Origin: Bugula neritina
Taxonomy: Eukaryota > Animalia > Bryozoa
DNA: 64,000 bases
Direction: 5' to 3'
Assembly (NCBI GenBank): GCA_964035545.1
Contig: OZ037767.1
Coordinates: 20,972,628 to 21,036,627 of the forward strand
The notes beneath the pieces were generated by a model that was given only the letters and a program-made list of their open reading frames with translations, was not told where the DNA came from and made no database searches. Positions within the stretch are counted from its first letter, which is position 1; each line of letters begins with the position of its first letter. Below are positions 21,101-60,900 of this stretch, piece by piece. The position numbers and the translations under genes are program-made.

Positions 21101-24100
21101 CTCCCCTTTCTGCTCAGTACCAATTGTTATGGCTGCTGTCTGTTAATGATTTCTTAGAATAACCTATTCATAATTATGATTTGCATGAAGTGATCCTCTT
21201 TGATCTTAGGATAACCTCCTACTAACCACTATCTCTCTCTTATGCTGGCACTTTGCTATCACTGTGTATCTGTATATCTCTTAATAACTGGGATAGATCT
21301 GTTGAATTATAAAGTATCTAAAAATAATTGAACTTTTAACTATGGAAGGATTTTTTTGTAAATCTAATTAAATTTCATGTTTGAATTGAAACAACTTTTC
21401 CTCACAATCAATGTTTTACTTATAAATTCCAAAAGACAAAAAGCTGATAGATCATTTATGCAATTACAAACTAAAAAACTGGAATTTACTGTCACATATA
21501 ATGATTTAGTTCCAGAACAGATAAAGGCCCCCTGTGCTGGATTTGTGTTGGCCCTAGGGGGTTCAAGTCCCTTCTATCCCAGCATATAACATTGTATGTG
21601 AATCATTGCAGCAATGGACAGCTCTGAGAGCTCTTATCTGGTGAACAATGACAAACCCTCTTCATCATACAAACGATACAATTCAGACGGCACTGCTGCC
21701 GATGCCGTGGAGCTGGCAATAGATGAGTTTGATGAGGTAAGAATATCCTAAAATTCTTACCTTCCAAGAATGCACATGTTAAGTCACTTGCAGTGTTTCC
21801 TTGAAGACACTTGATATTTTCACTCTCACCGTGTTAGATATTATTTTGGTCTCGTGACGTTATATTGTCTTGTTCGTGCTGCTGCAGTACCAAGTTTACA
21901 CCGTGTTTGTGAATGTTTTCATAACTTGTATTTTAAACTGTAGGGAGGAAAAAATAGGGTAAGACTATGTTTCAGTATTTGCTGTACAGGCATATTTAAT
22001 CTGCTTTATTCATGGCATTTGGAGTCAATGTCTGCTTTTCCTATTAGAGGGTTGAGGGTTTAACCTTCACTGCAGTGTGCAGCTATGTTGCCTACATATA
22101 TTAGTCTAGACTGGGACAAAACAGGGCAATAATAACGTAATATCTTCAGTTACTAACGCTCGTTGAGTTGGTAGCGAGTTGGTAGCGAGTTGGTAGCGAG
22201 TAGGTAGCGAGTTGGTAGCGAGTTGGTAGCGAGTTGGTAGCGAGTTGGTAGCGAGTTGGTAGCCTGGCGCACCAAATCTCAAAGTTCTTCAGCCACCAGC
22301 ACTTACTTATGCAATTAGAAAAATTTGGGTTTTTCTGATTTCACTTCAAATAATGATATTCACATCAAAGAAATAGTTTGTTAGAGGTGCCATTTAAATG
22401 CTTTATGTAAGATTAAGTAATAAGGTATTGGCACATTTTGTCTTCCATAAGTAGTGGAGTATAATGTGTACTGCTGTCTGAGAATTATTTGGTTAGCATC
22501 AGCTACCCTCTAGTTTTCTAATGATGAGTAAGCTGGTTGGTCAAAGGCCTTTATTGGTGTAAAGGATACTGGTAACTGTAAACTAAGTGTTCTAAAAGAA
22601 ACAGCACCACGTGTAGAGTCTAGTTAACTTTTCTTCCTTAATCAACTTTAATATGCAGTTAGTTGTGATCTAAATACTATGGGAGTAAGTGAGTGAGTGA
22701 GTGAGTGAGTGAGTGAGTGAGTGAGTGAGTGAGTGAGTGAGTGAGTGAGTGAGTGAGTGAGTGAGTGAGTGGGTGGGTGGGTGGGTGGGTGGGTGGGTGG
22801 GTGGGTGGGTGAGTGAGTGAGTGAGAGGGTGGGTGGGTGAGTGAGTGAGTGAGTGAGTGAGTGAGTGAGTGAGTGAGAGAGTGAGTGAGTGAGTGAGTGA
22901 GTGAGTGAGTGAGTGAGCGAGCGAGCGAGAGAGTGAGTGAGTGAGCGAGCGAGCGAGAGAGTGAGTGAGTGAGTGAGTGAGTGAGTGAGTGAGTGAGTGA
23001 GTGAGTGAGTGAGTGAGTGAGTGAGTGAGTGAGTGAGTGAGTGAGTGAGTGAGTGAGTGAGTGAGTGAGTGAGTGAGTGAGTGAGTGAGTGAGTGAGAGA
23101 GTGAGTGAGAGAGGGAGGGAGTGAGTAGAAGATATGAGCGACACTGTAACACTTCTTTAAATTATATTTTATCAGATTAGAAATGAATCTGAATTAGTTT
23201 CCAGACTGGTTCAATATTACATTTTGTGGTTCTCAATGTCACTGCTAAGTATCTTGTGGGAAGAACTTTAAAACAACCTTTTTTTTCTTCAAGTCAACTT
23301 GAATGTGGCACCCCACTGCATTATATTGAAATAAATATAAATCAATGCTTAAGCATACTTTTACCAAATATTATACTAACCAGTTTGTGGGCTAATATAT
23401 ACTCATTACTCTAATCTGCCTCTTAGACTCTACTACGCTGCCATGTGTGTCTTAACTCTATTCATGTATCAGTCTTTTACACTAGCTGTTGATGCTAAAC
23501 TCTCACCTGTCTGACAAAGTATAAGTGTGCTAACTATTCTACATGTTTACCTGTATGCTTTATAGTTTATACTATAATATACCTTGACACTGTATACCTG
23601 TACACTGTGTACCTGTACACACCTTGTACATGTTGTCAAGCTGTAACATACCTCATACTATTTATACTGACAACACCATCTGTGATGATGTTATACAATG
23701 CTCCCTCCATATCTCACTAAGCACCCCAATTTGTGACATAGTGAAATACCAGAGTTAACTCATGGATCTGTTAAATTCGGCCATTTTGTCCTTATACATA
23801 AGCCACAAAACAGGGTTCCAGCCCGTCAATAGAGTTTTGCGAAAAATGGATCCGTGAGATATTGAGGGAGCACTGTATTTCCTATTCTATTTGTATATTT
23901 ACTTAAATGTCTGGGTCTTAATTTTCTACTGCTGGGATTGGGAGTTGTCTCTCCTTGGGGTTGTTTATCTGGTGTTTATTTTCCTACTTGGTCCTAAAAG
24001 CTAAGAGTTGTATTTTGCATACACGGCCTGAACCAGCTGTTATCAAATCTGCTGTACTGTGTTTGTGATTTTTGTTGAACTACTTTCTCTATTGGTGTTA

Positions 24101-27100
24101 TTTTCATGGTTACATAGTGCTACATATACTGAATGTGATGCCAACTTTAGAATGATACCCCAGACAGAAATACGCTGACATTCAGGGACGGGGAAAGAAT
24201 CATAGACTACGTTCTCGCCTACTCTGAGTCATCCGAAGCTGACCAGAATGCTAAGCGAGACTCCTTCCACAAGGCGCTGAAGGAAGAAGGTTTACAGCTG
24301 GAGATAGAAGACAAGATGGTAAATATTCCCTTCAGTCTCTTCACAACTACTATTCAGATTTTAACTCTGTGGGCATATAGGGAAGAGTTGTTTCCCCTTT
24401 TATCTTAAGTTGGCATTAATACCTCATCACATGTGGTAAGATTTTAGCAAGGATGTGGACACAAACTGGTAACATTAGGGTAGAATAGGGGAATAAACAC
24501 TTTTGTACGGATGGATACATTAATTCAATTACGACTAAATTGCGTGGTGAAGCAATATTCACTAGGTTTAAGTAGTTGAGTTATTTCTTCCCCTCACTAC
24601 AGCTAATTTTGTCCAGCAAAAGTTTTGCTCACCTTGTGTGAAGTATGTTTGAGTTTGTAGGTATTTTATTGAACTATTACTTGTGGTGCTAGAATTATAA
24701 TTATTTGGCAAATACCAGGAATGTCCAAAGAGTGATTAATTCCTAGCGTTTAGGAGTTATATTCCCTCAGCCATTATATGATTTTCCCCTCCCCCATGTG
24801 TATTCTAATACCTTAAGTTACAGCCTCTCTTAGTTTTATATGGGCTTGAATTGCACATTTTTGTGATATTTTCTTAACATTGTTAATTATCTACTCTTTG
24901 CTCAGTTCTTGACTATTTAATGTCTATGATATGAATTGTACTTTTTTTTACTCTTTTTCATTTGTATAAATCCATGTGTTAATTCCATAATTAATTTAAA
25001 CAGCTATTTATATTTTTATTTAAACTCAGTTTTTAACCAGAATATTGTATTCTATTGCTTTATATTATATTATATTGTATTTTGTTATACTGGAATATAT
25101 TTTACTATATTAGGTACATTATGTGTATTGTAATGTATTATATTGTATATTTTACTGTATTATATTGCATTATACTGTATATTATTATATTATATTGCAT
25201 TATGCTGTATATTATTATATTATATTGTATTATACTGTATATTTTTATATTATATTGTATTATACTGTATATTATTATATTATATTGCATTATGCTGTAT
25301 ATTATTATATTATATTGCATTATACTGTATATTATTATATTATATTGTATTATACTGTATATTTTTATATTATATTGTATTATACTGTATATTATTATAT
25401 TATATTGCATTATACTGTATATTTTTATATTATATTGTATTATACTGTATATTATTATTATATTATATTGTATTTTAGTATTCTCAAGATCTCCAGACGT
25501 ATTTCTGTAAAGTTCATATGCCCTGGAAGATGTGTTTGGAGTATGCAGAGCTGTTCAAGATCAAAATGCCTATACAGGTAAGTCTAGTTACTTTTTATAC
25601 AGGTAAGTCTAGTTACTTTCTATACAGGTAAGATTGTTACTCTCTATACAGGTAAGTCTAGTTACTTTCTATACAGGTAAGTCCCTCTAATCAGAACATG
25701 TACTGCACTGTGTTTGTTGGGCCCCCTTGTTAAATTTATATGTACAATGTTGGTATTCTAACAGTGTCTAATTTCTGTATACTAAACTTAGTGTGTTTAT
25801 TGGCTGGTTTACTATCAACAGTGTGCTCATTGGCTGGTTTACTATCAACAGTGTGCTCATTGGCTGGTTTACTATCAGCAGTGTGCTCATTGGCTGCTTT
25901 ACTATCAGCAGTGTGCTCATTGGCTGGTTTACTATCAGCAGCTATTACCTTTACCTACTGCTGCCGCTACTTCAACAATTTATTTGTAGAAAAATGATGT
26001 TGATGAGCCAATGACTGCCCAGTGCTGCACCCCGTTTGCCATGTGCAGACCAAACGTAGAAGAAGAAGAGGACTATTTCACTTCTCCCTTCTATAAGGAC
26101 GGGACGTAAGTAGAACCCCCTACCTTATGGCATATTATTTCATGAACCTTTTGTAGTAATTCATAACATTGTAGTATTTAAAGTTTTCTGAAGCAAATTC
26201 AGTTTTTCAAATAAACTGTTGAAGTCAAACTAACGGATCGGCTACTTTTTTGCTCATTTATTTAATTAGAAAGTTCAATCGTAATCGGGGATTATTCCTT
26301 AAATCAACTTTGACCTCTGCAGATTTGTTCTATGGCTCTTTAAAGTATTCATACAAACTGCCATCTAGTGGCTCTAGCGGCTACCAGCCTACTAACCACC
26401 AGACGGTGTGCTTAACCTAAGTGAAACCAGCACCTCCCTAGGGCTGTCTAATCACTCTTGTAGAGTATTATGTTACTCAGTTTCATCTGATATAATACAT
26501 TCTTGTAAAAACACCGTATATGCTTTATTCTGGTTCTGTGATATTAGATTTTTATAATTTTGTGTTGAGAATGTGTTAAGCCTAAGACTTATTCTATCTA
26601 CTGAACTCTAAAGTAAAAGTTCTACATTGCATGAGGGCAAACATTTTGCAAATAATATGATCCGTATTACTTATAACTACATGATGCAATTGCTCTCCTA
26701 TAAGAAGAACTTTTTTGTGGTGCACACATCTTTGTGTTTAGAAATTTCCAATATTTTTAATTGAACTAACAACGGCACCAAAACATTATACTTTATCTCA
26801 ATTGGCATTTTATTAGTAAGTTTTCCTGCAGATAATATCATGTTTAAAGATGTCTACATTATTATGTGATGTAAATTTTCTCGGTAATAACTCAGATTGT
26901 GCTGATGCTTTAACAGGGACCTGTAAGTGTGGAACCTTAAGCACTGCAACTGTAAGACTGTCAGTAGATTTTACGTTCTTGTAAATAGATATTGTGAAGA
27001 TGGTTTCAGCTACAGCCCACACTCTGAACATTCATATATAATGAGTTATGCTTTATTCAGCTTGGATCTCTGATAAAATAATAAAAAAATTAACTTGGCA

Positions 27101-30100
27101 GACAAAAAAGATTAGTCATTGCCGGTATTTTTTCAACTGGTGAAGTGTTTTTATCTGTTGACTACATGTTGAAACTGTGACTCATCTTTTTGAAGCAACT
27201 GTAGATTGTGGGATAACTTGTCTCTTTTAAAGTATCTATGATTGTGGGCCCCATAAGTAGCTGAAAGTATCTTTAATCTACCAACTCTTCGTCCTTCCTC
27301 CCCTTCTCAGTTTGAATTCAGACCAATCATCTTCACTCTATGGCTATTCTTGCTTCCACTTCATACATTGCTAGCAATGCTCTACCATGTGTCTGCATGA
27401 TTATACCTAGACTAGATGCATGTTGTCCTGCATTGTGTACTTTTTATCTATACACCAGGGATTTAATTTCTTCAAACAAAATATTTTGCTGAAACTGTAT
27501 TTTATTTGTCTAGGAATATTCATGCCATACAATTTCAAATAACTAAATGTATGCTGTGTTGAAATATCCTTTCTAATTTTACTAATGGTTTATGGAGATT
27601 TTAACCCATTCTTTTCTTGCCAATTTAGACCTTGCTTTACACTGCTTTTTGCTCATCATATCTATCCCTTTCTATAGCTGGTACTAGTGTTTACTGGCTA
27701 CTGTTTTAATTCAGTTATTTTCAGCATTAATTTTTTGATTTTAATTTTATTTTTATAATTTCTCTAGCTTTTACTCTGTTATGGATAAACTCACAACGAA
27801 AGCTGACAGTTACTCTGATTTGGTAGTTACGCTCAGCTTCCTTGCTTTAGATGCTTTTTCTGTATGAGAACTCAACATCAGCATATATTATTTAGACGAC
27901 AGGCTAACTTACGTACAAGAACATTATTATTGGGCTACACATGTGTGCACTGTGATCGCAGCTGAGCAGTTACCCAATGCTGATAAATGTCATAAAAATT
28001 GGAATAATCAGTGAAATAATTAACCCTTATTAATATTTGTGTCCAAAATTGATTTGGAATTATATTCCCCCCTATAATCTTTAAAAATTATTAAACTTAA
28101 CTAAAAGCTTTCAAGGACGTGTAGCTTCAAAAGAATATTTTATAAATAATAAAACACATCATTTTAATATACAATAAAATGTACACGCAGTTATAAATAA
28201 TTTGTAAGATATTTTTTGAAAAAAAAAGATTGAGAATATATATTAGTAGCTCATTTTATTTTATCTTACAAAACACACGACATTAATAAATAATTTAGTA
28301 AACTTTTTTTCAAACCTAGTTTTGTACTAACTTATTGTTTCATTTCTGAAAAGAGAAAACGTATTATGTTTCATCTCACAAAAACTTCTTTATTTTCAAA
28401 CTATAAGTCAAGTTACCCCTAAAAATAACATTGTATTGATGTGTCGTTTGTTGCTGGTAACATTATGGTTTTGTGATGATTCCAGTTTCATAGACTATCA
28501 AGGTCCTGACGTACCTCAGCCTAATTTCTTCACTCCAGCTCAGAGAAGTAGGATGGTACATGAGGTACTGTTGAGGACACGCTATGGTGATGAACAACAA
28601 CAGTTTGGTAGGAACCTCAATCTACAATTCAGCTCAAATAACTTCTCAAAATGTATTTAATATACAGCATTTTAAATTTGCATTACCCTGTTCTTTTTAA
28701 AAGGAAATTCTCTCATCTTGTCCAATAAATTGTATAAAATCATCTGTGAGATAAAGGTTTTTCATCATGTGGTCTTAATAACGAGGTGCACAGTCTATGA
28801 TAACTGCACTGCATGGCTATATGGCAGCTGATAGAGCACCTGTATGTCATGCCGATATTACAGCTACTTGTTAGTGCTGTTGTCTGCATGTCATCATCTC
28901 TTTAAAATAAGATAAACTCAACTCTGCTATTTAATAGCCACTCAGTTAGAACAACATGTCTTGCTAATAGTTTATTCAGTATCCAAAGGCCAATGGATTA
29001 AGTTGAAACATTAGATTAAGAAACTCCAGTCCATGTATTCATGTGATCCCCATTTTCCATCATGTAGGGTGCTTCTTATAACACCAGGTAAAGTTTTAAG
29101 TTTCTTAATATTTTTATTTGATGCTTATAAGTTTTAGATTTTATTGTTTATTGTTCAACAGTTTTGATTTCATTTTATGTTTCCTATTTGAGAGTCTTCA
29201 CTCCGTCACTTTCAGATATCACTGTTAGTCACTCTAGCTTCTGTGTGTCACCTTTCAGGTATCAAAAGACTCGTGTCGCAAGGTGTCTACACCTCTTTCT
29301 TCCCCCTTCACTCTGGTTCTTATAAGTTTGAGAAACTCGGTGTTGACAGAATTGAGAACAAAAGACAGGAATTGTTTTATGAATGGGCGAGACCTGGCGC
29401 TTTCATGAAGGAGCAGCCGTATGATGCTATCCGGTGAATGTTGTGTTGCACTATATCATATTATATTATACTATACTGTATTATATTACACTATACTGTA
29501 TTATATTACAATATACTGTATTATATTACACTATACTGTATTATATTACACTATACTGTATTATATTACACTATGCTATATTATATTACACTATACTGTA
29601 TTATATTACACTCTACTATATTATATAGCACTATACTATATTATATTACACTATTCTCTATTATATTTACTATACTGAAAAATGTTACAATGTGTAGTAT
29701 TATGTTGCATTATATTTTATTTTATCACACTATAATGTATTATATTACGCTATACTGTATATTACTTTATACCATATTATATTACACTCTAATGTATTAT
29801 ATTACCGATGCTGATTTGTTATTTAATGAGCCACTATATTGTTCCCAGGGAATATTTTGGTGAGAAAGTCGCCATATACTTCAGCTGGCTAGGGTTCTAC
29901 ACCCTTATGCTGGTGCCAGCCTCCATTGTTGGTCTCATAGTCTTCATCTATGGCCTGGCCACCATGTACACAGACCCAACGAGCAATGAAATATGCGGGA
30001 AAGATGGCCACCTCATCATGTGCCCACAATGTGACGAGCTCTGCACCTACTGGAGGCTCAACACTTCCTGTCTCTACAGTCGGGTCAGTTTCCTCGATCT

Positions 30101-33100
30101 CTTCTCTTTCCGTCTTTCCATCTCTTATGTCCATTTATGTTCTCAGATCAACTCGCCGTTTACATGCCATCAATATTTTTCTGTCTGTCACATATGTCTA
30201 TCATCTCTATGTTTCTGCATATCATCTCTTTTCACCTCCATTTCTACCCTTACCCTCCTTTTGCCGTTTTTACAAAATTTATTTATATCGGTTGTTTTTT
30301 CAATATTTTTTACAATCATATTTTCCTGCTCCTTCCACAGCACGCCTACTGTGTCCCATAGAACTGAGCCAACATTTACTGCTTAACTTTGTAGGTCACA
30401 TACACTGTTGATAACCCTGCAACGATATTCTTCACTATATTCATGGCACTGTGGGCAACTTTCTTCATGGAGTTTTGGAAACGGCAACAGGCTCGTATCC
30501 AGTATGACTGGGATGTGGCCGACTATGAAGAGGCAGAGGTGAGTGCTATGACGTCACGTAATGCCACAGTAGCATCATAAGATGTCACTGTGACGTTGTG
30601 TGATACCACTGTGATGTCACGCAACATCACAGTGACGTCATGTGCTGTTGCTGTGACATTGCATGATGTCACTGTGGTTTATATATCTTTTACTTTTTAA
30701 TTTCATGTAACATGAAGATTTAAGCCAATTAATACAGAATAACATGGTGTTCTGTGAATATTCTACAATATAAGGTGCTATAAATGCCATATATGTGTCA
30801 TTGGGTATATTATGTCTTTACGATATAGCTTAGTCTTCATATGTGGTTGAATATATTTTTCCAATGCATGATGATACATTATGATACGATGCACTTTATG
30901 ATACATTCTTTGAAAGGATTTTGCCCCACTGTAGAGTCTAGCTCTACTGTGCACATGACTCTGTTTTGAACAGATTGATTTTGCAGTTGAACTGCTGATT
31001 CATAAATAGTTTGAACATCTGTGTGAATTTGTAAAAATAATCATACCATTGAGTTCTGAATTTTAGATTTATAACATCTGTTGAGTATCTCTATTGCATC
31101 TAGTCTCAGGGAGTATTTGAGCCTGATGTTGGGATTTTATAGTAAGCCCTCAGAAAAGGTTGAATCACAGTCTATGTTTATCACAAGCTGACATTTTATG
31201 TATTGTATGTATTGCATGTTTCGTACTTTAGCAAAGCATGCGGCCAGAGTTTCAAGCTAATGCTAAGAATAAGAAGAAGAACCCAATTACTCATGACTAC
31301 GAGCCTTACATGACCATGTGGGAGAGAGGCCTCCGTATTATGTCCTCTCTTATGTTCATCTTCTTTTTGGTAAGCCTGTCATTTCTTGAGTTGATTGTGC
31401 ACATTTTCAGATGCGCTTTACTACTAGTGCCCTGTGTCTATTACTATAAATAAACTTATACTTTACTAGTGATACATGTGCTTTGACTTGCTGCAACTTT
31501 CTATCTTTGATTTTAGTTACTGGTGGTGCTGGCAGCCATTTTGGCCGTAATAATATACAGAATATTTGTGGTGGTGTTGATCTACAACAGCCGTGACCAG
31601 CTCATCAAGTCTCAAGCCAGTCTAATCACCACTGTCACTGCAGCCTGTCTGTCGGTTGTTGTCATCACTTTGCTCAACAAAGTTTATGAGAAGATAGCAG
31701 TCTTTCTCACAGACCGAGGTGAGTGATTTACAGACAGGGATGAGTCATCTATAACTCACATCTGCTCTGTATCACAGACAGTGATGAGTCATGTATAACT
31801 CACGTCTGCTCTGTATCACAGACAGGGATGAGTCATGTATAACTCACGTCTGCTCTGTATCACAGACAGTGATGAGTCATGTATAACTCACGTCTGCTCT
31901 GTATCACAGACAGGGATGAGTCATCTATAACTCACGTCTGCTCTGTATCACAGACAGGGATAAGTCATGTATAACTCACGTCTGCTCTGTATCACAGACG
32001 GGGATGAGTCATGTATAACTCACGTCTGCTCTGTATCACAGACGGGGATGAGTCATGTATAACTCACGTCTGCTCTGTATCACAGACAGGGATGAGTCAT
32101 GTACAGCTCACGTCTGCTGTTTTCGTCTCATCAACATAACCTCATTATTATGTAATACTTTTAGAGATGTGGAAGTATCAGACTGAGTGGGAAGATTCAT
32201 TTACTGTAAAGATGTACTTGTTCCAGTTTGCTAACTACTACGGCACCATCTTCTACATTGCATTCATCAAAGGCCGGTTAGTATTCTTGCTATCCCTATG
32301 GCGTTACTCGTTTGTATTCCTAGTAGTAAATATGTTGAATTATCTAATGTTTTGTAAATAACCGCCATAACTACTTGGTGCCATATATGTATATGAACGT
32401 GTTTATTTAAAACAGAGGTCCATGTGTTGTGTTCCTAAAATTAATTTTATCTTTGCTTTTAGATATCAATGAGGCCAGTCTCTTTGTTGTCTACTAATTG
32501 TTTTATTTTTATAAAAATAGCTTAGGTTCCATCGTCAACAGGATATATATTTGGAGCGTACAGATGGTCCCCTCTGATGCCGTAGGTCATCTTGTAGCAT
32601 GTAACACCTTTGCACACGCTACAAACTTCATTGCATAGTTTGCGGGAGTGAAATATGTGTATGTTAAGCTGTTCTGTTGATTTGATTGATAGGTTATATT
32701 TTATTGTCAAATAGTCTGGCTTCGTTTAGATTGGTTGATTTACAGGAAGATTTGATAACAAATTAAAATTGATTTCTACTATGAATTCTCTTCAAAGCCA
32801 AAGTGGTTTTAGTTCCATTGAAGTTAATAATGTTTAAGAAGATTTGTATATATTTAGATATAATTTACAAATTTACTGTCGATCATATTTAAATGGAGCA
32901 AGACTTATTGAAATGCGCTAAATGTTTGGAAAATTATTGCTATACTGTGAGCTGGAATCACACTGTAGATTCGTGTGTTTATAGTGCTCATTAATTTCGT
33001 ATTGACTCTTCACTATCCAGTGTGTTTCCAGCTTGCAGTTACCAACAGCTATGTGTCTTACAGCTTATTGTATACAGATATTCAGTCTATTATGGAGTGA

Positions 33101-36100
33101 GTCATCCATCCGCTTTCTGCCTTGAAAGGTGCTGCCGTTGTGCTGCTGCTCGGCTACTGTAATGTCATATTTTAGGCTGATCAGAAAATCTAACTGAAAA
33201 TATTCGGTTACTAAAATGACTCGCTGTTGCAGACTAAAGAACTATTTCATAAAAATGCATTCTTTTATTCTGTGAGACTTTATGTATATACATTGCCTTT
33301 CTCTAAAGGTAATGGGGACAAGTGTGTGATGGTGTATTGAATAAAATCGTATCTAAGGTTATCTGCCTAGATGAATATGCATTTGAGTAGAACTTGCATA
33401 CTTTCCATTGCCAAGTTCTGTTTTACACCCAAAACTGCTTCATCTTGTCTAATTAACGGTTGACTCAATCATTGCTGTTGATGTGCCCTCTTCTTGCTAC
33501 AGAATGCAGGGGTCTCCACTGCGCTACACCAAGTTGGCAGGCAGACGACTGGAAGAGGTTTGTCTCATGTCTAGACTAAGTTCTATATATAAGTGTTATC
33601 CGTTACTTTAACCCTTTATGGGTTGAAACTTGATTGGCTACTCACCACTGCTCTCTCCTATTAAAATTAGTCTTTCATGTTCTGGTTCTTTCTCAGTCAC
33701 TCAAAGTCATTCAAACTAAAAACATTCAGTCAGTGATTTGCTGCTTTGTAAACTCACTCCTAGTTGGAAGAGCTCGTACTCTGACATGACTCGCTTCTAT
33801 AGGATCTACTGTCATGAAAAGGATTCAAATTTAGTTAATGGAACGTCTCTTTTGATTGGGTCTACCTCTTTCTTTCTGTGTTCTCAGTGTTGCCCTATTT
33901 GAAAGATGTTTCATGTTTTCTATACATGTACACTAACCTGTCATATTCTACAGCTGCAGAGTTTCTAACCAACGGGAAACCTCCTGGACAGACAGTCAAT
34001 TTCTACTAACTACAAACATTCTACTCGCATGTATTTATATTTGTGGGCTTGGCGTGTTTAACCTGTCCTTGAATAGTGCTGCGTGTAACTAACTGTGTGC
34101 TCTATTTATGTACAGAATCATTGGCTATCCAGGCGACTATATCCGCCCTTTCTACTATCGGAATGAGGAGGTTTGTTTGGTGTCGCTATGCATGACTGTA
34201 CCTTCAGTCTGCAACTTTAACTCAACCGCTTTTTGCACCGTGCTTGGCCAGTCTTCGATGTCTTTGCTTGTTTATTTAAAGTTAAATTAACAGATATGAC
34301 AAGTTTAAATTGGGTGTTACTATACATTGTATATATTTATGCTGGGAACAGTGGGTATATCTAGAGACTTATTGAAGTCGAATTAATGCATAGCTCATTG
34401 GCTAGACCTCCTCCTGTTTCTCATCTTTGTAGTTGTTACTATTCATGTATAGTGTATGTACTTTCCACCACCCTAACTGTAACCTCTGTATGCTGTTGTC
34501 ATCTAAGATTTCTAGTTGTTCATCATCATACTTCATAGTGATAGCTCAGTACTCCCACTGACAGTACAGTACTACTCACACCGACACTACAGTACTACTC
34601 TCACACTGACAGTATAGTACTACTCTCACACTGACACTACAGTACTACTCTCCCACTGACAGTATAGTACTACTCTCACACTGACACTACAGTACTACTC
34701 TCCCACTGACAGTACAGTACTACTCACACCGACACTACAGTACTACTCTCACACTGACAGTATAGTACTACTCTCACACTGACACTACAGTACTACTCTC
34801 CCACTGACAGTATAGTACTACTCTCACACTGACACTACAGTACTACTCTCCCACTGACAGTACAGTACTACTCACACTGACACTATAGTACTGCTCACAC
34901 TGAAACTACAGTACTACTCTTACTGACAGTACAGTACTACTCACACACTGACACTACAGTACTACTCAGTACTCACACTAACACTACAGTACTCCTCACA
35001 CTGACACTACAGTACTACTCACACTGACACTACAGTACTACTCTCCCACTGACAGTATAGTACTACTCACACACTGACACTACAGTACTACTCACACACT
35101 GACACTACAGTACTACTCACACACTGACACTACAGTACTACTCACACTGACACTACAGTACTACTCACACTGACAGTACGACACCACTGGCATTTGTATT
35201 CACCATACTTCATGCAGCTTGATGCAAAGTGTAATAATGCCTTACTATCTTCTACGACCGATCAAGTTCACCCCAGCTTCATGTCACTCTATGTTTACCT
35301 CAGCACCTTTCTGGCTTGACATTGCCTTTTTAATAATTGAAGCATATTCAGAGTTAAATAATCTTAACATATCTATAAAATATATTTCTTCGGTGCAAGC
35401 ATGCTCTATGCACTTTTACTTAATCAATGTTTTACCATAAAATGCAATAACAAAGCTACCAAAACTTAGTAATTAAATATCTGATAGATAGCTGTAACAC
35501 TTTACTGTAAATTTAGCATCTTTTACAAAACTATATTTAACTTTTTGCTAATTTGAGTTTTTACTTTTGCCATAAAATTTGTTCTAAAATTCTGACTTGT
35601 GTGATTTCGTTGGCTTGTATTGGTTTGCTGGTGCTTGCAGTGCGATCCATCTGGCTGTCTGACTGAGCTGGCTATACAACTCGCCATTGTTATGGTGGGT
35701 AAACAAGCCCTCAACAACTTTAAGGAAATAGTCATACCGTGAGTATAATATATCACTACACACAGTATAGTATCTCTCTACACACAGTATAATATCGCTC
35801 TACACACAGTATAATATCTCTCTACACACAGTCTACACTCTCTGCTATAATTATATTATTATTTTCTTTAAAGCAGTTTGCTACTATTTCTATATATAAT
35901 TCTCGTGCATTTTTGTGGTCTTTTTTTGCAAACTACTGTTGGAGGCTGTATTAACCTCGTATTTCTACTTTCATAAAATTTTGCTGTTGCTAATAATTAC
36001 TGAAACTTCTAGCATTGTCTCAGTTTCCTATACCTGCCAGAGATTTGTTAGATGCAGTTGAAAATGTTAAACAATGTGAAGCAAAAGATCCTTACTTTCA

Positions 36101-38433
36101 ATACGGCAGCAACTAAGCCATGTTCTAGGGTCAAAGGTTAATTATACAAGTTGAACTGGCAGCTATTGGAGTTTCATTGTTACTAAGATTTTTCTGCTGT
36201 TGGTAGAATTTTGGTGAAACTGTTCAAGAGCCGTAAAGGCAGGAAGAAGATTGAAACAGACGATGACAAATACACAAGTTGGGAGAGAGACTACGACCTC
36301 GTGGATTTCCCGGTACACGGGTTGTACGAAGAGTACCTAGAAATGGGTTTGTTCTCACAATGTAGTCTTTCATTTGTATTTTTGTAATTATTGGTTTACT
36401 TTAAGCTGAAAATAGTAGCCTTCTCACAGGATAGTATTTGTAAGTTTTAAATCAGTTTTCTTAAATTATTTACCATAAACCTTATAAACTTCCGTCAAAG
36501 TTATGATATAGAAATTCTTTAAACCATCTGTTCAAATGTATGCGGTGTTAACTTTTTGCTAAATCTGGTTTTAAGTTGCTAGATGTTTGGCTTCGACTTA
36601 GCTGGCATGTTTTCAGCAATATTTGATTTTGCACTCTTTCATCAACTTTTCATTGAATTTTGATTGTAAATAGATGTATTCTTATTCTTGCAGTAATACA
36701 GTATGGTTTTGTGACTCTATTTGTTGCGGCCTTCCCATTGGCACCCTTCTTTGCTCTTCTCAATAACATCATAGAAGTAAGGCTAGATGCCACTAAGATG
36801 ATCACTCAGTGGAAGCGCCCAATGGCAGACCGAGCTCAAGATATTGGAACTTGGTTTGTGATTCTACAGGCCATCTCTAAAATGGCGGTGCTTATCAATG
36901 TGAGTTTCAACTCTTCTGCTCTTATCACACACATGCATGCTGATGTCACCCACATGTAATGCAGTCAGGTTTTAGAATTACTAACCGAGCTCATGCTCTT
37001 GGTAAATGTTAGTTTGACTCGGTGGTTGTGTTGCAGTGTTGGTTTTCAAATATTGTGCAATATAACACAATAGAGCTGCTGCAATATATTCATTGTAATA
37101 TGTTGAGTGCAACTTTGTAAATTCTGTGTAATTAATAGTAACTGATATTTAAATTTACAGGCAGGCATTATTGCTTTCACTTCGGATTTCATCCAAAAGA
37201 GCATGTATGAGTACACGGACGTGAAGCAAGACACTGGTCAAAGCTACATTGAGTGGAGTCTCTCCACCTTTAGAACCTCTGATTTTGATAATGAGAGCAT
37301 GCCCATTCCTGCGTTTGAGAATGCTACATTTGGTGATACGATTTATGCCAACCATGAGTGCAGGTCAGTCAAGATTTTTATTGATAATTATTTACACTTA
37401 CTAGACATGAGTGTCTTCTTAACAGTAATGCGTTTGCTTCAGCATTTTCGACTTGAGAATTCAAGATCTGACAAATTTCAGTGCTTCTAGTAGGCATTTT
37501 TCTCAGATTTCAGAATCATTTGGCTTCTTATTATGGGAAAGTTCTGTGCACTAACTATATAATCATGAAGGTTGAGAAAGTTTAAATTTTTGCTGCTTAT
37601 TTGTGTGTGAAAACTTTTTTTCTACATCAGATTATTCATCAAGTGTGAAGGCCATCGTCACTTATAGTTTGAGAACTTTTGTCTTTCTTGTTAGATATCG
37701 GGACTTCAGGAACAGCCCCAATTCAAGCACATGGGACGACTCTGATCCCTCAACTCAATACGTTTTGACAAAAACATACTGGCACGTGCTCACTGCTCGA
37801 CTCGCCTTCATTCTGGTGTTTGAGGCAAGTATATTTGGTCAGGAATTTTATATGATTTGTTTTACTAGAACTAGTAGATGCGAGTAATTATGCAAAGTTT
37901 CTATAAAATTTAATAAGATCATTATTAAACAGTGCATTTTCTGCCTGCTATGCCGCAGCACTTGTTTATATGTTGACAGCAACACATGTTGATGTAACCG
38001 TTATTTCTTCCAATAGCATTCACTACCAACGCTCGTTACTGATAATATGCTGTTGACATAGTAAAACTATCCTATATCCATACATGTGATACCTTGGTAA
38101 CACCTGCTGACTATGCATGTTTGTTTGATACCTTCTGACTATGTTCACATATATATATGCGTGATATACCTTGGTGATACCTACGGACTCTATATACACA
38201 TGTGTAATACCTGCTGACTATTTTCACGTATATTATGTAGTAATTTATTTTTCTGTATTCAGCACCTGGTGTTGGGAATTGCCGAGCTCATCAACTTCCT
38301 GGTACCTGACGTGCCAATTGATGTGCGAGACCGAACTCTCCGAGAGAAATTCCTTGCTAAAGTCTCGCTTCACGAGAGAATTAAACAACAGAAGGAAGGT
38401 GACAGCGCAGACGTGAATGGCACAACTTTTTAG
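3190..38433 (+). CDS. ANO: Anoctamin / TMEM16 Ca2+-activated chloride channel or lipid scramblase (ANO1-7 type), multi-exon
   Basis: Phase-compatible exons: 3190-3211 (or 5537-5867), 15122-15247, 18396-18416, 19023-19037, 20543-20569, 21612-21736, 24151-24318, 25479-25577, 25990-26105, 28486-28607, 29259-29433, 29849-30083, 30395-30538, 31232-31369, 31517-31718, 32165-32276, [32521-32581 | 33503-33557 | 34116-34170], 35641-35738, 36207-36346, 36694-36899, 37161-37363, 37695-37824, 38263-38433 (TAG). Family motifs: [84 protein letters not shown] (Ca2+-binding residues intact), PDVP. Confidence 0.95.
3209..3256. mobile_element. P-element-type excision footprint: 32-bp TIR-TIR palindrome (3217-3248) between 8-bp TSDs TAGGTAAG
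   Basis: TAGGTAAG|CATTGAACTATAACTA-TAGTTTTAGTTCAGTG|TAGGTAAG; CATTGAACTATAA is identical to the left terminus of the THAP element at 10633. Confidence 0.8.
5537..5867 (+). CDS. Alternative first coding exon of the anoctamin gene
   Basis: 110-codon open frame from ATG ([10 protein letters not shown]...SPAQY) ending at a phase-1 donor TATG|GTGAG, compatible with exon 15122. Confidence 0.7.
8073..8204. mobile_element. Foldback hairpin / MITE-like palindrome
   Basis: taaattcactggttccagattctcaaactc...gaatttgagaatttggaaccggtgaactta; inverted pairing over nearly the whole length. Confidence 0.7.
10496..10632. repeat. 137-bp direct repeat, copy 1 (copy 2 at 12850-12986)
   Basis: agcttgctgttattgg...gggatgctctcagc, identical by eye in both copies; they bracket the THAP element. 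Confidence 0.9.
10633..12849 (-). mobile_element. Internally deleted P-element/THAP9-like transposon nested in the hAT element
   Basis: Imperfect ~65-bp terminal inverted repeats (AACTATAA..CCCTGGAA..AATGTAA..CGTCCAAA..CAGCCATATTG). Decayed two-exon THAP domain: ~12546-12457 [12 protein letters not shown] and 11921-11750 [26 protein letters not shown], with a frameshift and a stop. THAP9-like C-terminal remnant at ~11221-11350 ([30 protein letters not shown]). Confidence 0.75.
22165..22263. repeat. 11-bp minisatellite (GAGTTGGTAGC) x9
   Basis: Direct reading; one variant copy. Confidence 0.9.
22686..23126. repeat. (GAGT)n/(GGGT)n microsatellite
   Basis: Direct reading; source of the SLTH ORFs. 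Confidence 0.95.
23696..23875. mobile_element. Tc1/mariner-pogo-type MITE (180 bp)
   Basis: TA|CAATGCTCCCTCCATATCTCAC ... GTGAGATATTGAGGGAGCACTG|TA: 22-bp TIRs with TA TSD. Confidence 0.85.
25140..25476. repeat. 30-bp AT-rich minisatellite ending at an ANO acceptor site
   Basis: tatactgtatattattatattatattgcat units. Confidence 0.9.
25571..25683 (+). repeat. ~25-bp tandem repeat of the exon end and 5' splice site (TATACAG|GTAAG) x5
   Basis: tatacaggtaagtctagttacttt(t/c) repeated. Confidence 0.9.
25790..25941. repeat. 30-bp minisatellite x5
   Basis: ttggctggtttactatcagcagtgtgctca units. Confidence 0.9.
29445..29800. repeat. 20-bp AT-rich minisatellite
   Basis: ttatattacactatactgta units. 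Confidence 0.9.
31729..32118. repeat. 44-bp minisatellite, ~9 copies
   Basis: cagacagggatgagtcatgtataactcacgtctgctctgtatca units. Confidence 0.95.
33503..33557 (+). CDS. ANO mutually exclusive exon B ([18 protein letters not shown])
   Basis: 55 nt, ctacag|A...GAAGAG|gtttgt, phase 2 to 0; same length, phases and donor as exon C. Confidence 0.85.
34116..34170 (+). CDS. ANO mutually exclusive exon C ([18 protein letters not shown])
   Basis: 55 nt, gtacag|A...GAGGAG|gtttgt; canonical anoctamin G.PG.Y...R.EE loop. Confidence 0.9.
34548..35178. repeat. 22-26-bp minisatellite (cactgacactacagtactactct)
   Basis: Direct reading, about 25 copies. Confidence 0.95.
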
Positions 38434-54902: not shown

Positions 54903-57900
54903 ATGGCCTTCTTGGGACTAGAATTGTACTCCTGGATTTTACTTTTCGTGCTGCTAGCCCTTCTCTATTGGTAAGTCAGCTTCATGTGTTTACTCTCAAA
55001 GCAGATGGCTCTCAACTTAACATTAAATATGCCGTAATAATCTTATGTTCAGCAAATTATATCAATCACTTTAACAGCAACAGCTTGTATTATGTATAAT
55101 CCCGAACTAATGAGAATTGAATCGTTCTGCTTTCAAGTGTAGTGAATTTTTCAATTCACTATATTATGTGGGTCGACTTATACAAAGCTACTGCACCAGG
55201 TTAATCACGTTATAACAAGTTTATTATTTACAAAGATACAAGAATTGAATTACTACTAAATGAATTATACGATTACATAATACTGAGCACTTTGTACACA
55301 ACTACTCTAAGCCAAGTCCCAAGCTGCTCTGCCCGGCTAGCTGCTTAGCGTGCTTCCACTACGCGTAGCTAGCTCCACCTGATATCAATTAACAGTCCTT
55401 CCTGATTGGCTAGTATTAGTGGTGCCACTGTCGACCATAAGACGCACGGTCGGCTGGGAGTCGATGTAGTCGACCTCCACAATAAGATAACGTAGAGTCG
55501 ACCCTTTCGATATATAAACTAAATTACTAATTGCACTACTAAAATCCATTACACTCGCCACACCTATCGAAAGGTACACTCTATGATTAATTTGGGCATA
55601 GAAGAATAAAAAAACCAGAAAGATTGAAAAAGTAAACAAGAATAAAAGAACACAAAATAACACCAGAATAACATAATCAAAGTGATTCACATAAACATTA
55701 ACAAGACGAGCGATTAATGGCTCGCCGACAGAGTTGACGTGTCTCACCAGATCACGTAAGGGAGCACGAGTATAGGAAGGGAAGGGGGGATAGGGACACG
55801 CTCACCTAGTCCGAGCCAAGCAGTTGGTGATGTCGAGAAACCACCAAAAGAATCTAGCGTGGCAAAAGAACTTCCCCAAAGGGGGGGGAGGGGGGTCGAC
55901 TTGTCTCCTTCTTATAAGATAGTGTCGAGCACCAACAGTCCACACTGATAACCGGTCGAACTCCCGAAGGGGGAATATAAAATTCCCTCAACTACACTTC
56001 TGTCTTTTACTTATTATTTTTCATGCAGGATTACTTCTTTTCTTTAATATTACCTTCATTACTTTATTTTACGATTTGCTCCCTTCTTTCAGCATCATTA
56101 TGTTGTCGCTACGGCGAAAAGAGAGAAGAACTCCTCTGTCTGATTGCATCCACTGTACCACACGGGTTGTAGGGCACCATCCGCCACGACAGTCACCAGA
56201 TCTGCTGCTATGGTGCTGCAAGAGTCCAGTTAAGCAGTCATAATCGAAGTCAGCAAACGTGCAATAAGAATGATGGGTGACTGCGTGACGGTGGTGCCGG
56301 GAGAAAGAATATGCTCCGCCATTAAAGTCTCACCTGCAACAGAATGCCAGAAACTGTTGAAGGGGTTTTCCTCTGGTCAGTACGACACCTCGACTGAGTC
56401 TCGCAACCTATTAACCACTGATTCTTATTAAATCACGCGGCCGACTGCCTCACTCAAAGTCGTCAGTGAAATCACTTGACTTAGAAAACTAGCCTTATCG
56501 TTATGATAAAGTGAGACTGATTTAAAGCTACCAGCTTGAATTCCATTTAACTAATAGAATTATACTAGTAGACTTACCATAAGACAGCCACGGCGTTAGT
56601 CTGCTGCCCACTTAGGCCTCGTAGTACGCCAGCTTGCCGGGTACGTGCGCGCACGTTGGCAGTTGAAATAGAAAAGAACGCTCTTCGCAGTGAAAGTGAT
56701 TACATCATACCCCTTTCACTAGCGAGCTGGCTTCGCTCTTTTCTATACCCCGGTGGTGTTATTATGATATATATTTACACCACTGGGTAGGCAACTCAAA
56801 GTTGTGTCTCCTTGTATTTAGGAAACGCAACTCTCAAATGCTCATCTCCCCAGATTTCTTTTATGATAGCTGATGGATGTTTTTCCACTGCATCACACAA
56901 GAAATCTTTTAAATAAGATGGAGGCGCCCTAGTGCGTTGCCTACGCTCCAACTGCACTGGGGAATTTGCTACTACTGGTGACTCTTCCACCACGGGTGGT
57001 GTCGCCAGTACGGGGGGGGGGTCCACCAGTACGGGTGGTCCCCTCCCAGCTGCCTCTTCCTCATGAATTTGAGGAAATGCCATCTCATTTGGGGCGATAG
57101 GCCTGTCGGCCGGCTCCACTGGTGGTGGGGCCGGCTCCGACTGGTCTTCCGGTGTGTCGGCCTCCTCCTCCTGGGGTGGAGGTGGCCGGAGCGAGTTAGG
57201 CGGCGCGCCGGTCGCCCCTTCCTGATCTTGCAGTATCTCCTCTATCTCCCTATACGCCATGCCTCGCCCCCTCATAGGAGGGCGTCTAGCGGGCTCTAAA
57301 AGAGGAGGTGCTTGACCTGCTGCACCAAGACTCGCCCAGTAAGATTTCAGCCGTGCTTCGTTCTGGACCGACACTTGTCCAGACCGTTCCACTTTATAGG
57401 TGTGATTAGGCATCACCTCAATCACGCAATAGGGACCCACGAACTTCGGCTGCAACTTAGCCGCCTGTCCGCGCCGCCGGCGATGACTGGTCATCCAGAC
57501 CCAGTCTCCCACCTTATACAAGGGGGGGGGGGAGGTCATCAGAGTCACCACTCCTGACCTGCCATTGCTGCTCACGTAGCACTTCGTAAGCCGTCCCCAT
57601 GCGTTTTACGAGCTCATCCACGTAGTCGTGGACGTTGCTCTCAGGAGCCGGAACATGATAAGTTACGTGCTCAGGAACCCTGGTTTCTCTCTCCAGCATG
57701 AGAAAATTAGGGGTCTCCAGTGTACTGGAGTGAGGGGTACTACGATAAGCTCGCATGATTTGCGGCAGCACCAAGTCCCACTCTTCCTGGCTCCTACCGA
57801 TAAGCAGGCTTCTCAGTGAGTCCCCTAGCATTCGGTTGTTCCGCTCCACAACCCCGTTCCCTTGCGGGTGATACGGGGTCGTCCGACTCTGGTTTACCCT

Positions 57901-60900
57901 CCACATTTTACAGAGATCGCTCCTGAGTTGCGACTGAAACTGGGCGCCTTGATCAGAGTGTGTTTGCTTCGGCAAGCCGAAATAGCAAAATACCTGCTGG
58001 TCCAAGGCTCTGGCCACCGAGGGGGCCGACGCATCTGGAATAGCCAGTGCATCAGCCCACCGCGTGAAATGGTCAGTTAATACCAGTATCCAGTTATTAC
58101 CTCACACTGTTGTGGGCATGGGGCCTACCAGATCTACAGCAACTACCTGCCACGGACGACCGGCATGGAGGCGACGCCTCCCTGCGGTCTCAGTGGGGCG
58201 GCCATGCTTACTAGCTTGGCATACCTCGCACTTACGCACCCGGAGTCGGACATCCCGGGTCATACCGTGCCAAAACCACTGGAGTTGAAGACACCTAGTC
58301 ACCCTACTAGCTCCTGCATGAGCTTGCTTATGGGTGTCCCAGATCAACTCCCGCCTCAGAGCGGACGGACAGACTACCCTCTCTCGTTCACTGCGACTGG
58401 TGCCGGCTGCCAACGTTATCGTTAGCAGCCCATCACCGTTAAACCGGAGGGAGTCCCAGCGGTGGCAGAAGTATTTAAACTCTGCACTCTTCACCCGCTG
58501 TTCGGCCTCACTCGGCCGCTGTCCCTCCTTCTTGGCTTGGACTAGGTCAGCTACCACCCCTGGTAGCGTAGCTTGGAGTTGACACAGCTCCCCTGACGTT
58601 CCTGAGCAGTGTGGGGTTTGCGTGAAGGTTGTTAACAGCTTCATTAGGGGATTCGGACCGAAGTTGTCCTTCCTCCCAGCTGTATACACCCGCTTTCCCC
58701 AACTGTTCTTCAACGTCCGAGCCAGGGGGTCCACCATTCCTGCGCTCGATATTCTGGCATTGCTTACACCCATCTGCCTGGCGGCGGCGGCTGAGTCCGT
58801 CGGCATTACCGTGTTTCTTACCGGGTCGATGTTCGATCCGATAAGAAAACTCTGCCAGGATTTCCAGCCAGCGCGCTACTTGGCTTGATGTTTCAGCCCG
58901 TCGACACAGCCATATCAAAGACGCATGGTCCGTCCGCAGCCGGAACGTACGCCCATATAAATATGGTCTAAAGTGTTTGACCGCCTTGACTACTGCCAGG
59001 AGCTTCCTCCTGGTTGTACAGTAGTTCTTCTCAGGCGCCGACAGGGCTTTACTATAGTAAGCCACCACCACCTCGCGACCAACTTGGACTTGCGACAGCA
59101 CAGCCCCCACATTATGGTTACTGGCATCAGTATCCAAAATGTACTCCTTCGCAGGGTCAGGATACGCCAAGATGGGTGCTTCCACCAGGCGATCTTTCAG
59201 GTGGTCAAATGCCTTCTGCTCGGCCTGTGTCCACTGCCATCGCACCCCTTTTGCTGTCAGCCGATTCAACGGCTGTGCAATTCCGGCGAAGTCTGTTATA
59301 AACGCGGCCTTGTCCTGTGCTTCAGGACTCAGGGGCATCTGCCAATACCCGCTTAACGAGTCCAACGTGCTGAAGAACTTGCTACCAGCTAAGGCATCGA
59401 GCGACTCATTGATCCTTGGAAGAGGGTAAGCGTCCTGGATGGTCACGCTGTTCAGCCTGCGATAATCAACGCAAAACCTCCAGCTCCCATCCTTTTTCCG
59501 AACCAGGACAACTGGAGAACTCCAGGCCCCATGGCCTGGCTCAATCAGGTCCCGGTTCAGAAGGTCTTGCACCTGCCGGCTCACTTCTCTCTCCTTCTCA
59601 GGACCTAATCGGCGGGTCGGCTGCCGGATGGGCGCCGTCCCCGCCGCCAGAGGCATCTCATGACAGACAGCCTTAGTCAGACCCATGTCATGGTCGCCGC
59701 AACTAAACACGTCCTTGTACTCAGAGAGTAGCCGCGCCATCACCAGGCATTCCCGCTTGCTCTCACAGCCGTCACAGGCATCCTCGTACAACTCCGCTAT
59801 GTGTTCAGGCACCCGCCCCCTGCCGTCTCTAGTGGGTATCCCACGGGCTTCGTCCGCTGTCTCCAGCGTGAGCCCAATATCCTCCTCCTGTACGGAGTGG
59901 AACTTCACCACTAGGGACCCAGCCGGCAATTCTACCGGCTCCGTGAAAGGATTCACGCACTGGACCAGGGACTCCCCCCGCTCATCCAGTCTATTCAGAC
60001 TGTTAGCGAGCTGGACGCCCCCCAGTGCACCTTCCACCACTCCTAGCTCGGAGATTTTCCTACAGTTCACTCTGCAGCGAACTGTAGCACGGGAGCGCCC
60101 AGGTACAGTACAGCGCTGTACCACCTGCACTCCCCCCACCAAGGGTCGGCCAAATCGGTTGACACAGGCCAGCTCACGTCCGGCCATCACCACCGCCAAT
60201 TTGTTAAAGTCGATGTAGCACCTGTGTCGCTTCAGAAATGGCATGCCCAAGATGGCGTCCTCCTTAAGTTGACTGACGATGAAGGTCTCGCTGATCGTCT
60301 GATCACAGACTCTACCAGTCAACTGGATTACCCCATAGAAAGGAATACACGACCCGTCCGCCAACGTGCCGTGCTCCCCTTCATATGGTTCTAGGCTAGC
60401 CGTGTCCCTAGCACTGAGAGTGTCGAATAGACGCCGGCTCAGTAGGTTTGTGGTACACCCAGTATCCAACAGGAATGTGACAGCTTTTCCGGCAAGCTTG
60501 CCGGGGAAGAAATAGCTGCTTCCATATGGCTGAGCGCTCACTGAGCGGTTCGTCTCTTGAGGCGACACCTCATGTGCATGGAGTTTGGGATGCACCTGTG
60601 CCTTTCGGTTGCGAGGGGGTCGTCGACGTCGCTTGGGCAAGCAGGTTACATCTCGGTCTTGCTCACACACGGGCGGCCGAGTGAATTCTCGGACTGGTGC
60701 TTGTGTGGGCAACCGAGGGAAATCCCTGTTTCGCTCCCACTCGTCGTACACTCCCTGATCAGGCAAACCTTCAAAGCGGTTTTTGAGTGCCCAAGCCGGA
60801 GGTTTTGGCGGGCCTTGCGGCCTACTAACTCTCCTTGGGACTTGCCACCCTGGCGAAGGCGGCCTCCTCACCCGGTGGGGTTTAGGCCTTGGCCTCTGCC

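Follow-up and report, generated by a model that had tools for sequence, protein, structure and literature searches.

Two alternative loop exons in an ANO4-like anoctamin gene of the bryozoan Bugula neritina: a putative mutually exclusive pair

We analysed a stretch of 64,000 nucleotides from the genome of Bugula neritina (referred to below as the window) and found, in an ANO4-like anoctamin gene, two neighbouring exons, A and B, that encode two versions of one extracellular loop. Judging from the genomic sequence, we consider it likely, with a probability of roughly 0.78, that this is a real tandem-duplicated, mutually exclusive exon pair, of which each mRNA would carry one copy, and that the gene would thus give two full-length proteins. 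That the pair as such is real and conserved we regard as probable. As far as can be told from the comparisons described here, it is probably also a splice switch that has not been described before. The positions of the features are given in Table 1.

Table 1. The anoctamin gene and the exons around the alternative loop (positions in the window)
Feature	Position	Strand	Remarks
ANO4-like anoctamin gene, homology-supported part	24151-38430	+	Pfam PF04547 matches; identity to P0179
Constant TM5 exon	32165-32276	+	aligns to mTMEM16F 543-575; 99% identical in sibling-species contigs
Exon A, 55 nt, non-canonical loop version, net charge +2	33503-33557	+	present in KAF6023228.1; Watersipora counterpart L044:42116-42170
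Exon B, 55 nt, canonical G-x-P-G-D-Y loop version, net charge -1	34116-34170	+	positional counterpart L044:43219-43273
Constant exon: loop end (C-x-P-x-G-C) and TM6 including the N and E calcium ligands	35641-35738	+	

A first-pass annotation of the window had taken the gene for an anoctamin and the two exons for its extracellular TM5-TM6 loop, and this identification has held up. Pfam family PF04547 matches the gene exon by exon on the plus strand, at window-equivalent positions of about 29.8-37.0 kb, with a best match of 101.8 bits against a curated cut-off of 28. The swapped exon aligns to residues 606-624 of mTMEM16A, that is, to the extracellular loop between helices 5 and 6. The exon pieces of the window are 93-100% identical to the GenBank ANO4 protein of B. 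neritina (KAF6023228.1, here P0179), about 98% overall, and P0179 itself matches the solved chains of ANO1 (E = 6e-146) and ANO6 (E = 2e-138) in the PDB. Furthermore, all six aligned calcium ligands of TM6-TM8 are conserved (N650, E654, E702, E705, E734 and D738 in mTMEM16A). We count about 17 coding exons in the homology-supported part of the gene; its 5' end lies outside the mapped part. Note that the exons were searched singly, that the public proteins P0179 and P0178 (isoform X2 of Watersipora) stood in for the full-length product, and that the only joined model is a local frame check across four exons. In the AlphaFold2 model of P0179 (pTM 0.84, mean pLDDT 85) the A loop forms moderately confident short strands (pLDDT about 82) between the helices at 226-255 and 283-320.

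A residue that is significant for the subgroup is found at the TM5 position K588 of mTMEM16A (Gln559 in TMEM16F). In the alignments Bugula has a Gln at this position. The TMEM16A/B-type chloride channel subgroup has the Lys, and at this position the Bugula protein departs from that subgroup. On this TM5 feature the Bugula protein looks more TMEM16F-like than TMEM16A-like, and with a Gln instead of Lys588 the analogy to an anion channel is weak.

Exons A and B are both preceded by cag, start with AAT, end with GAG and continue into gtttgt; they have the same phase and lie 558 nt apart. The TM5 exon upstream of them ends with CG, the first two bases of a split Arg codon, and is followed by gttagt. 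The coordinates of the two exons, their common phase and donor, and the peptides with their net charges had all been given correctly in the first-pass annotation, as had the end of the TM5 exon and the start of the TM6 exon. The TM6 exon ends at 35738 and not at 35739 (the donor GT occupies 35739-35740), a base short of what a reading of 33 codons would give.

Since 55 is not a multiple of three, the inclusion of both exons or of neither shifts the frame, and the frame alone can account for the exclusion at the protein level. This expected frame break is what we see: either exon on its own leaves the reading frame intact, A and B together run into a TGA inside exon B, and an mRNA with neither exon reaches a TGA early in the TM6 exon. 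Such products would carry an early stop and would presumably fall to nonsense-mediated decay or end up as truncated proteins. Equal length, equal phase, the splice sites and the frame are the genomic hallmarks of a mutually exclusive pair, and on these hallmarks the proposal that A and B exclude each other is supported.

Between the two exons, 6 of 18 residues and 23 of 55 bases are identical, figures that we counted against the pair reading. Their homology is indicated by the six common residues, by the fit of both peptides to the loop pattern of the family, and by the counterpart that each of them has in Watersipora. No third loop-like exon was found in the 3.4-kb interval between the constant exons (32277-35640), and an Rfam scan of positions 31000-37000 gave no matches. 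We also considered whether a weak donor marks the regulated exons; this argument was dropped when the constitutive exon that ends at about 36346 proved to have gtttgt as its donor, too.

Two intronic minisatellites flank the alternative region. The first (31730-32118) consists of 8.8 copies of a 44-nt unit and ends 47 nt before the TM5 exon, and the second (34552-35179), with 25.6 copies of a 25-nt unit, lies in the intron that separates exon B from the TM6 exon. In the contigs of the sibling species the 44-nt array seems to have collapsed, as one stretch of contig L017 aligns to several units.

The two versions of the loop can be compared with those of other anoctamins. About 110 anoctamin loops, nearly all of those examined, resemble exon B, with the pattern G-x-P-G-x-Y ... 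R-x-E-E. Of this family pattern exon A retains the Gly, the Pro, the Tyr, the Gly at position 13 and the R-x-E-E end. The Pro of the loop is invariant in an alignment of 30 sequences, and the R-x-E-E end is present in both A and B. Among the ANO4-like proteins of Mytilus, of which one 90% cluster has 62 members, we see that P0181 differs from P0182 and P0183 at the split codon before the loop (Lys or Arg); this may be due to species differences or to other alternative exons.

The first-pass annotation had pointed out that an exon B that is never spliced in and is not conserved would be a dead duplicate, and had suggested looking into related genomes. In a second bryozoan, Watersipora subatra, the pair is conserved. 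The Watersipora orthologue (contig L044) has two 55-nt exons of the same phase with AG/GT borders between its TM5 and TM6 exons; the first encodes FIGSPSDYAKLAEQRIEE and the second VNGTPDHYMRTFGKRGEE. It also has the same downstream ASXH/PHD neighbour as the gene on the Bugula sibling contig L020, so that the synteny is maintained. Between the introns of Bugula and Watersipora no alignable blocks were found. In the coding sequence, exon A and the first Watersipora exon have 10 of 18 residues in common, and 7 of these 10 codons are synonymously changed; the differences at codon positions 1, 2 and 3 number 8, 5 and 13, respectively. Synonymous-site turnover is seen in both orthologous exon pairs. 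The signature of each type is conserved as well, with G-S-P..Y.K-L-A in the first exon as opposed to the canonical Y-x-R-x-F in the second. Such a turnover of codons with conserved residues, next to introns that do not align, bears the mark of long-term selection on the peptide in both copies. Taken together with the single loop exon of a mollusc and the single-loop paralogues of Bugula described below, the Watersipora pair indicates that the exon pair is old and under coding constraint, and it places the duplication before the split of the Bugula and Watersipora lineages.

The rival explanation that survives best, and one that we still consider unlikely, is that one of the copies has become a relic without use in B. 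neritina, either as a dead duplicate or as a mere poison exon that induces decay, and that the gene makes a single protein isoform. The public models could be read in this way, as the protein databases hold one loop version per species. The GenBank model of Bugula, KAF6023228.1, which was made with AUGUSTUS using transcriptome hints (PMC7576161), has only the A loop, with one Arg-to-His difference. The RefSeq models of Watersipora have only the second exon, in all four of the isoforms X1-X4; the first exon may therefore be rare or stage-restricted. When the protein collections were searched with the open frames at the TM5 exon and at exon A, only genomic ORFs of sibling species came up and no transcript fragments. 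Exon A, furthermore, has a non-synonymous change between the sibling species. On the other hand, both copies have kept an open frame, the exact length of 55 nt, the AG/GT borders and the family residues in two lineages with saturated introns, and neither the synonymous-site turnover in both orthologous pairs nor the complete identity of exon B in the sibling species fits an unused relic.

The sibling-species comparison is based on the contigs L017-L020, whose introns are about 90-92% identical to those of the window and contain indels in addition. Exon B is identical in these contigs at 55 of 55 positions and exon A at 53 of 55, with one synonymous and one non-synonymous (Arg to His) change. 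For exon A, two changes in 55 nt compared with an intron divergence of about 9% correspond to a Poisson P of about 0.13, the siblings being too close to separate exon A from intron. All in all, the contigs and the protein that JGI, Logan and GenBank list under the name Bugula neritina diverge from the UK assembly by about 8-10% and many indels in the introns and by about 2% in the protein, which suggests that these sequences come from different members of a cryptic species complex. The assembly used here, with its 216,009,554 bases in 321 contigs, matches the Darwin Tree of Life assembly of B. neritina, for which 216.00 Mb in 320 scaffolds plus the mitochondrion are reported (PMC11480708).

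A relative of Bugula is represented by a JGI contig (L021) that is intron-free and collinear with the spliced exons over 629 codons and a 3' untranslated region, at an identity of 75-91% per exon. Its 55-nt loop segment (L021:880-934) encodes LSGTAYKPTRYLGGRMEQ and is without the canonical P-G-D-Y. The best match of this loop in the window is exon A (a score of 29, compared with 1 for B), and its nucleotides are nearer to the second Watersipora exon; we count it with neither type. The Pro that is invariant in 30 other anoctamins is missing from it, and a Pro is found three residues later. The metagenome contigs of close relatives (L012, L022, L023 and L025, from ENA and JGI) end before the loop exons.

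Less probable than a relic, and in our view improbable, is that the pairs of Bugula and Watersipora are independent duplications, or were reshuffled by gene conversion, and that the pair is younger than the split. When the 42,974 stop-free 18-residue windows of the 64-kb window were scored with BLOSUM62 against the first Watersipora exon, exon A came out on top. The best match is reciprocal (31,277 and 42,974 such windows), with a score of 46 over a background of about -17.6 to -17.7 +/- 8.4 to 8.5. An independent origin sits badly with the scores inside each species: A reaches 13 with the adjacent B, and the two Watersipora exons reach 24 with each other, both well below the 46 of A with the first Watersipora exon. 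The order, size and phase of the exons are also identical in both species. It would agree better with the second Watersipora exon, which is nearly as similar to A (35) as to B (37), and it has to be kept in mind that 18 residues hold little phylogenetic signal.

Finally, the idea that exon A owes its open frame and its splice sites in an intron to chance is, on the comparison of the sequences, effectively refuted: there are many AG...GT open frames of 40-79 nt in the same introns, but none of them resembles the loop, while exon A, when compared with the Watersipora exon, exceeds the background score by about 7.5 standard deviations and also occurs in a public protein.

The mollusc Lottia has introns at the same two positions and a single 58-nt loop exon in an interval of 783 nt. 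In Bugula, the loops of the paralogues on C3 and C8 were compared. The paralogue on C3 (20878796-20882022; L007, L049) is located on the same strand about 120 kb upstream of the ANO4-like gene; its loop is B-like, is fused to the TM5 exon and has the donor at the same position after E-E. It is a linked paralogue without the alternative pair. In the paralogue on C8, TM5 and TM6 are encoded too close together to leave room for another loop exon. Going by these structures, the small loop exon is ancestral, and the duplication, on the species and paralogues sampled, is specific to the ANO4-like gene in bryozoans.

In the course of events that we propose, the starting point would be a small ancestral exon for 18 residues of the extracellular loop between TM5 and TM6, which would have been duplicated in the bryozoan lineage before Bugula and Watersipora separated. 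Each mRNA would now take one of the two copies, presumably with both being used within one animal and with a regulated choice between them. The predicted isoforms would share TM5, TM6, the calcium site and the frame of the loop (G-x-P ... R-x-E-E), while about 12 loop residues, located where the subunit cavity opens to the outside, would set them apart; they might also differ in function.

The first-pass annotation had inferred that the exchange alters the charge of the outer mouth. A conserved charge switch is ruled out by the Watersipora loops, of which the first has a charge of -2 and the second of 0, compared with +2 for A and -1 for B in Bugula. It had further pointed to the equivalent segment of TMEM16A and its basic residues. 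The segment does align as named, and K603 and R621 of TMEM16A are tied to anion selectivity in a passage of a review that cites Peters et al. (PMC7118279). However, the equivalents of these residues are the same in both Bugula isoforms: that of K603 sits in the constant TM5 exon, and those of R621 and E623 belong to the R-x-E-E end that is identical in A and B. The position of K588, as described above, is a Gln. As to function, our best guess is that the exchange tunes the outer vestibule or some contact on the extracellular side, and that it is no simple switch of charge. A bolder possibility, less likely than not, is that the pair, probably kept since before the split of Bugula and Watersipora, swaps the loop at the outer mouth of a TMEM16F-like protein in such a way that the isoforms differ measurably in ion permeation, lipid scrambling, gating or extracellular interaction. 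A switch between channel and scramblase behaviour is speculation.

In Dscam and 14-3-3 zeta, the choice of one among several exons is enforced by RNA pairing between docking sites and a selector. In Bugula, a shallow test showed no intronic block conserved with Watersipora that could serve as an RNA-pairing selector, and among the inverted repeats on either side of the exons the best one (33226-33239 with 34202-34215) has one arm disrupted in the sibling species. We have dropped such a pairing as a candidate, the intron alignment and the bracketing repeat giving it no support in this test.

Tandem-duplicated mutually exclusive exons are well known in other channel genes, for example exons 5N/5A of Nav and exons 8/8a of Cav1.2. 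Like these, A and B are adjacent homologous exons of equal length and phase, encode a short segment close to the permeation or gating machinery and are conserved across species. Unlike these, the Bugula pair is found in a TMEM16 gene and changes an extracellular loop instead of a transmembrane or voltage-sensor segment, and its exclusive use at the protein level is predicted from the frame. Alternative splicing of short segments also occurs in TMEM16A (ANO1), where the segments a, b, c and d are cassettes or alternative starts in cytosolic regions. The Bugula gene resembles TMEM16A in that alternative splicing of an anoctamin would change a short protein segment, and differs from it in that its two exons would exclude each other and encode the extracellular loop between TM5 and TM6. 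In full-text searches of the literature, no report of mutually exclusive exons came up for any anoctamin or any bryozoan; in the literature searched, the feature is thus new in its family and position.

Mutually exclusive exons in channel genes usually mark segments in which small changes matter physiologically. If both isoforms are expressed, the extracellular TM5-TM6 loop would be a tunable part of a TMEM16 protein, and two natural variants, together with the Watersipora pair, would be available for patch-clamp and scrambling assays. If the isoforms differ in function, they would amount to a natural loop-swap experiment on a poorly defined part of TMEM16. For annotation, the pair means that the current public models each give only one of the two loop versions. 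The record of gene structures in bryozoans is very thin, and the pair contributes to it an exon duplication that is specific to the lineage and has been retained in two groups of cheilostomes.

Two further features of the window lie outside the alternative region. A long repeat with a period of 12 nt, (THSL)n on the minus strand, occupies positions 22650-23190 inside an early intron of the anoctamin gene. At 55200-62100 there is a GC-rich block (51-57% compared with about 34%) with long open frames on the minus strand that, by eye, look like the gag-pol of a retrotransposon. On either side of the block there is an open frame of 141 nt (55205-55345 and 61931-62071); the two are identical and would be compatible with LTRs.
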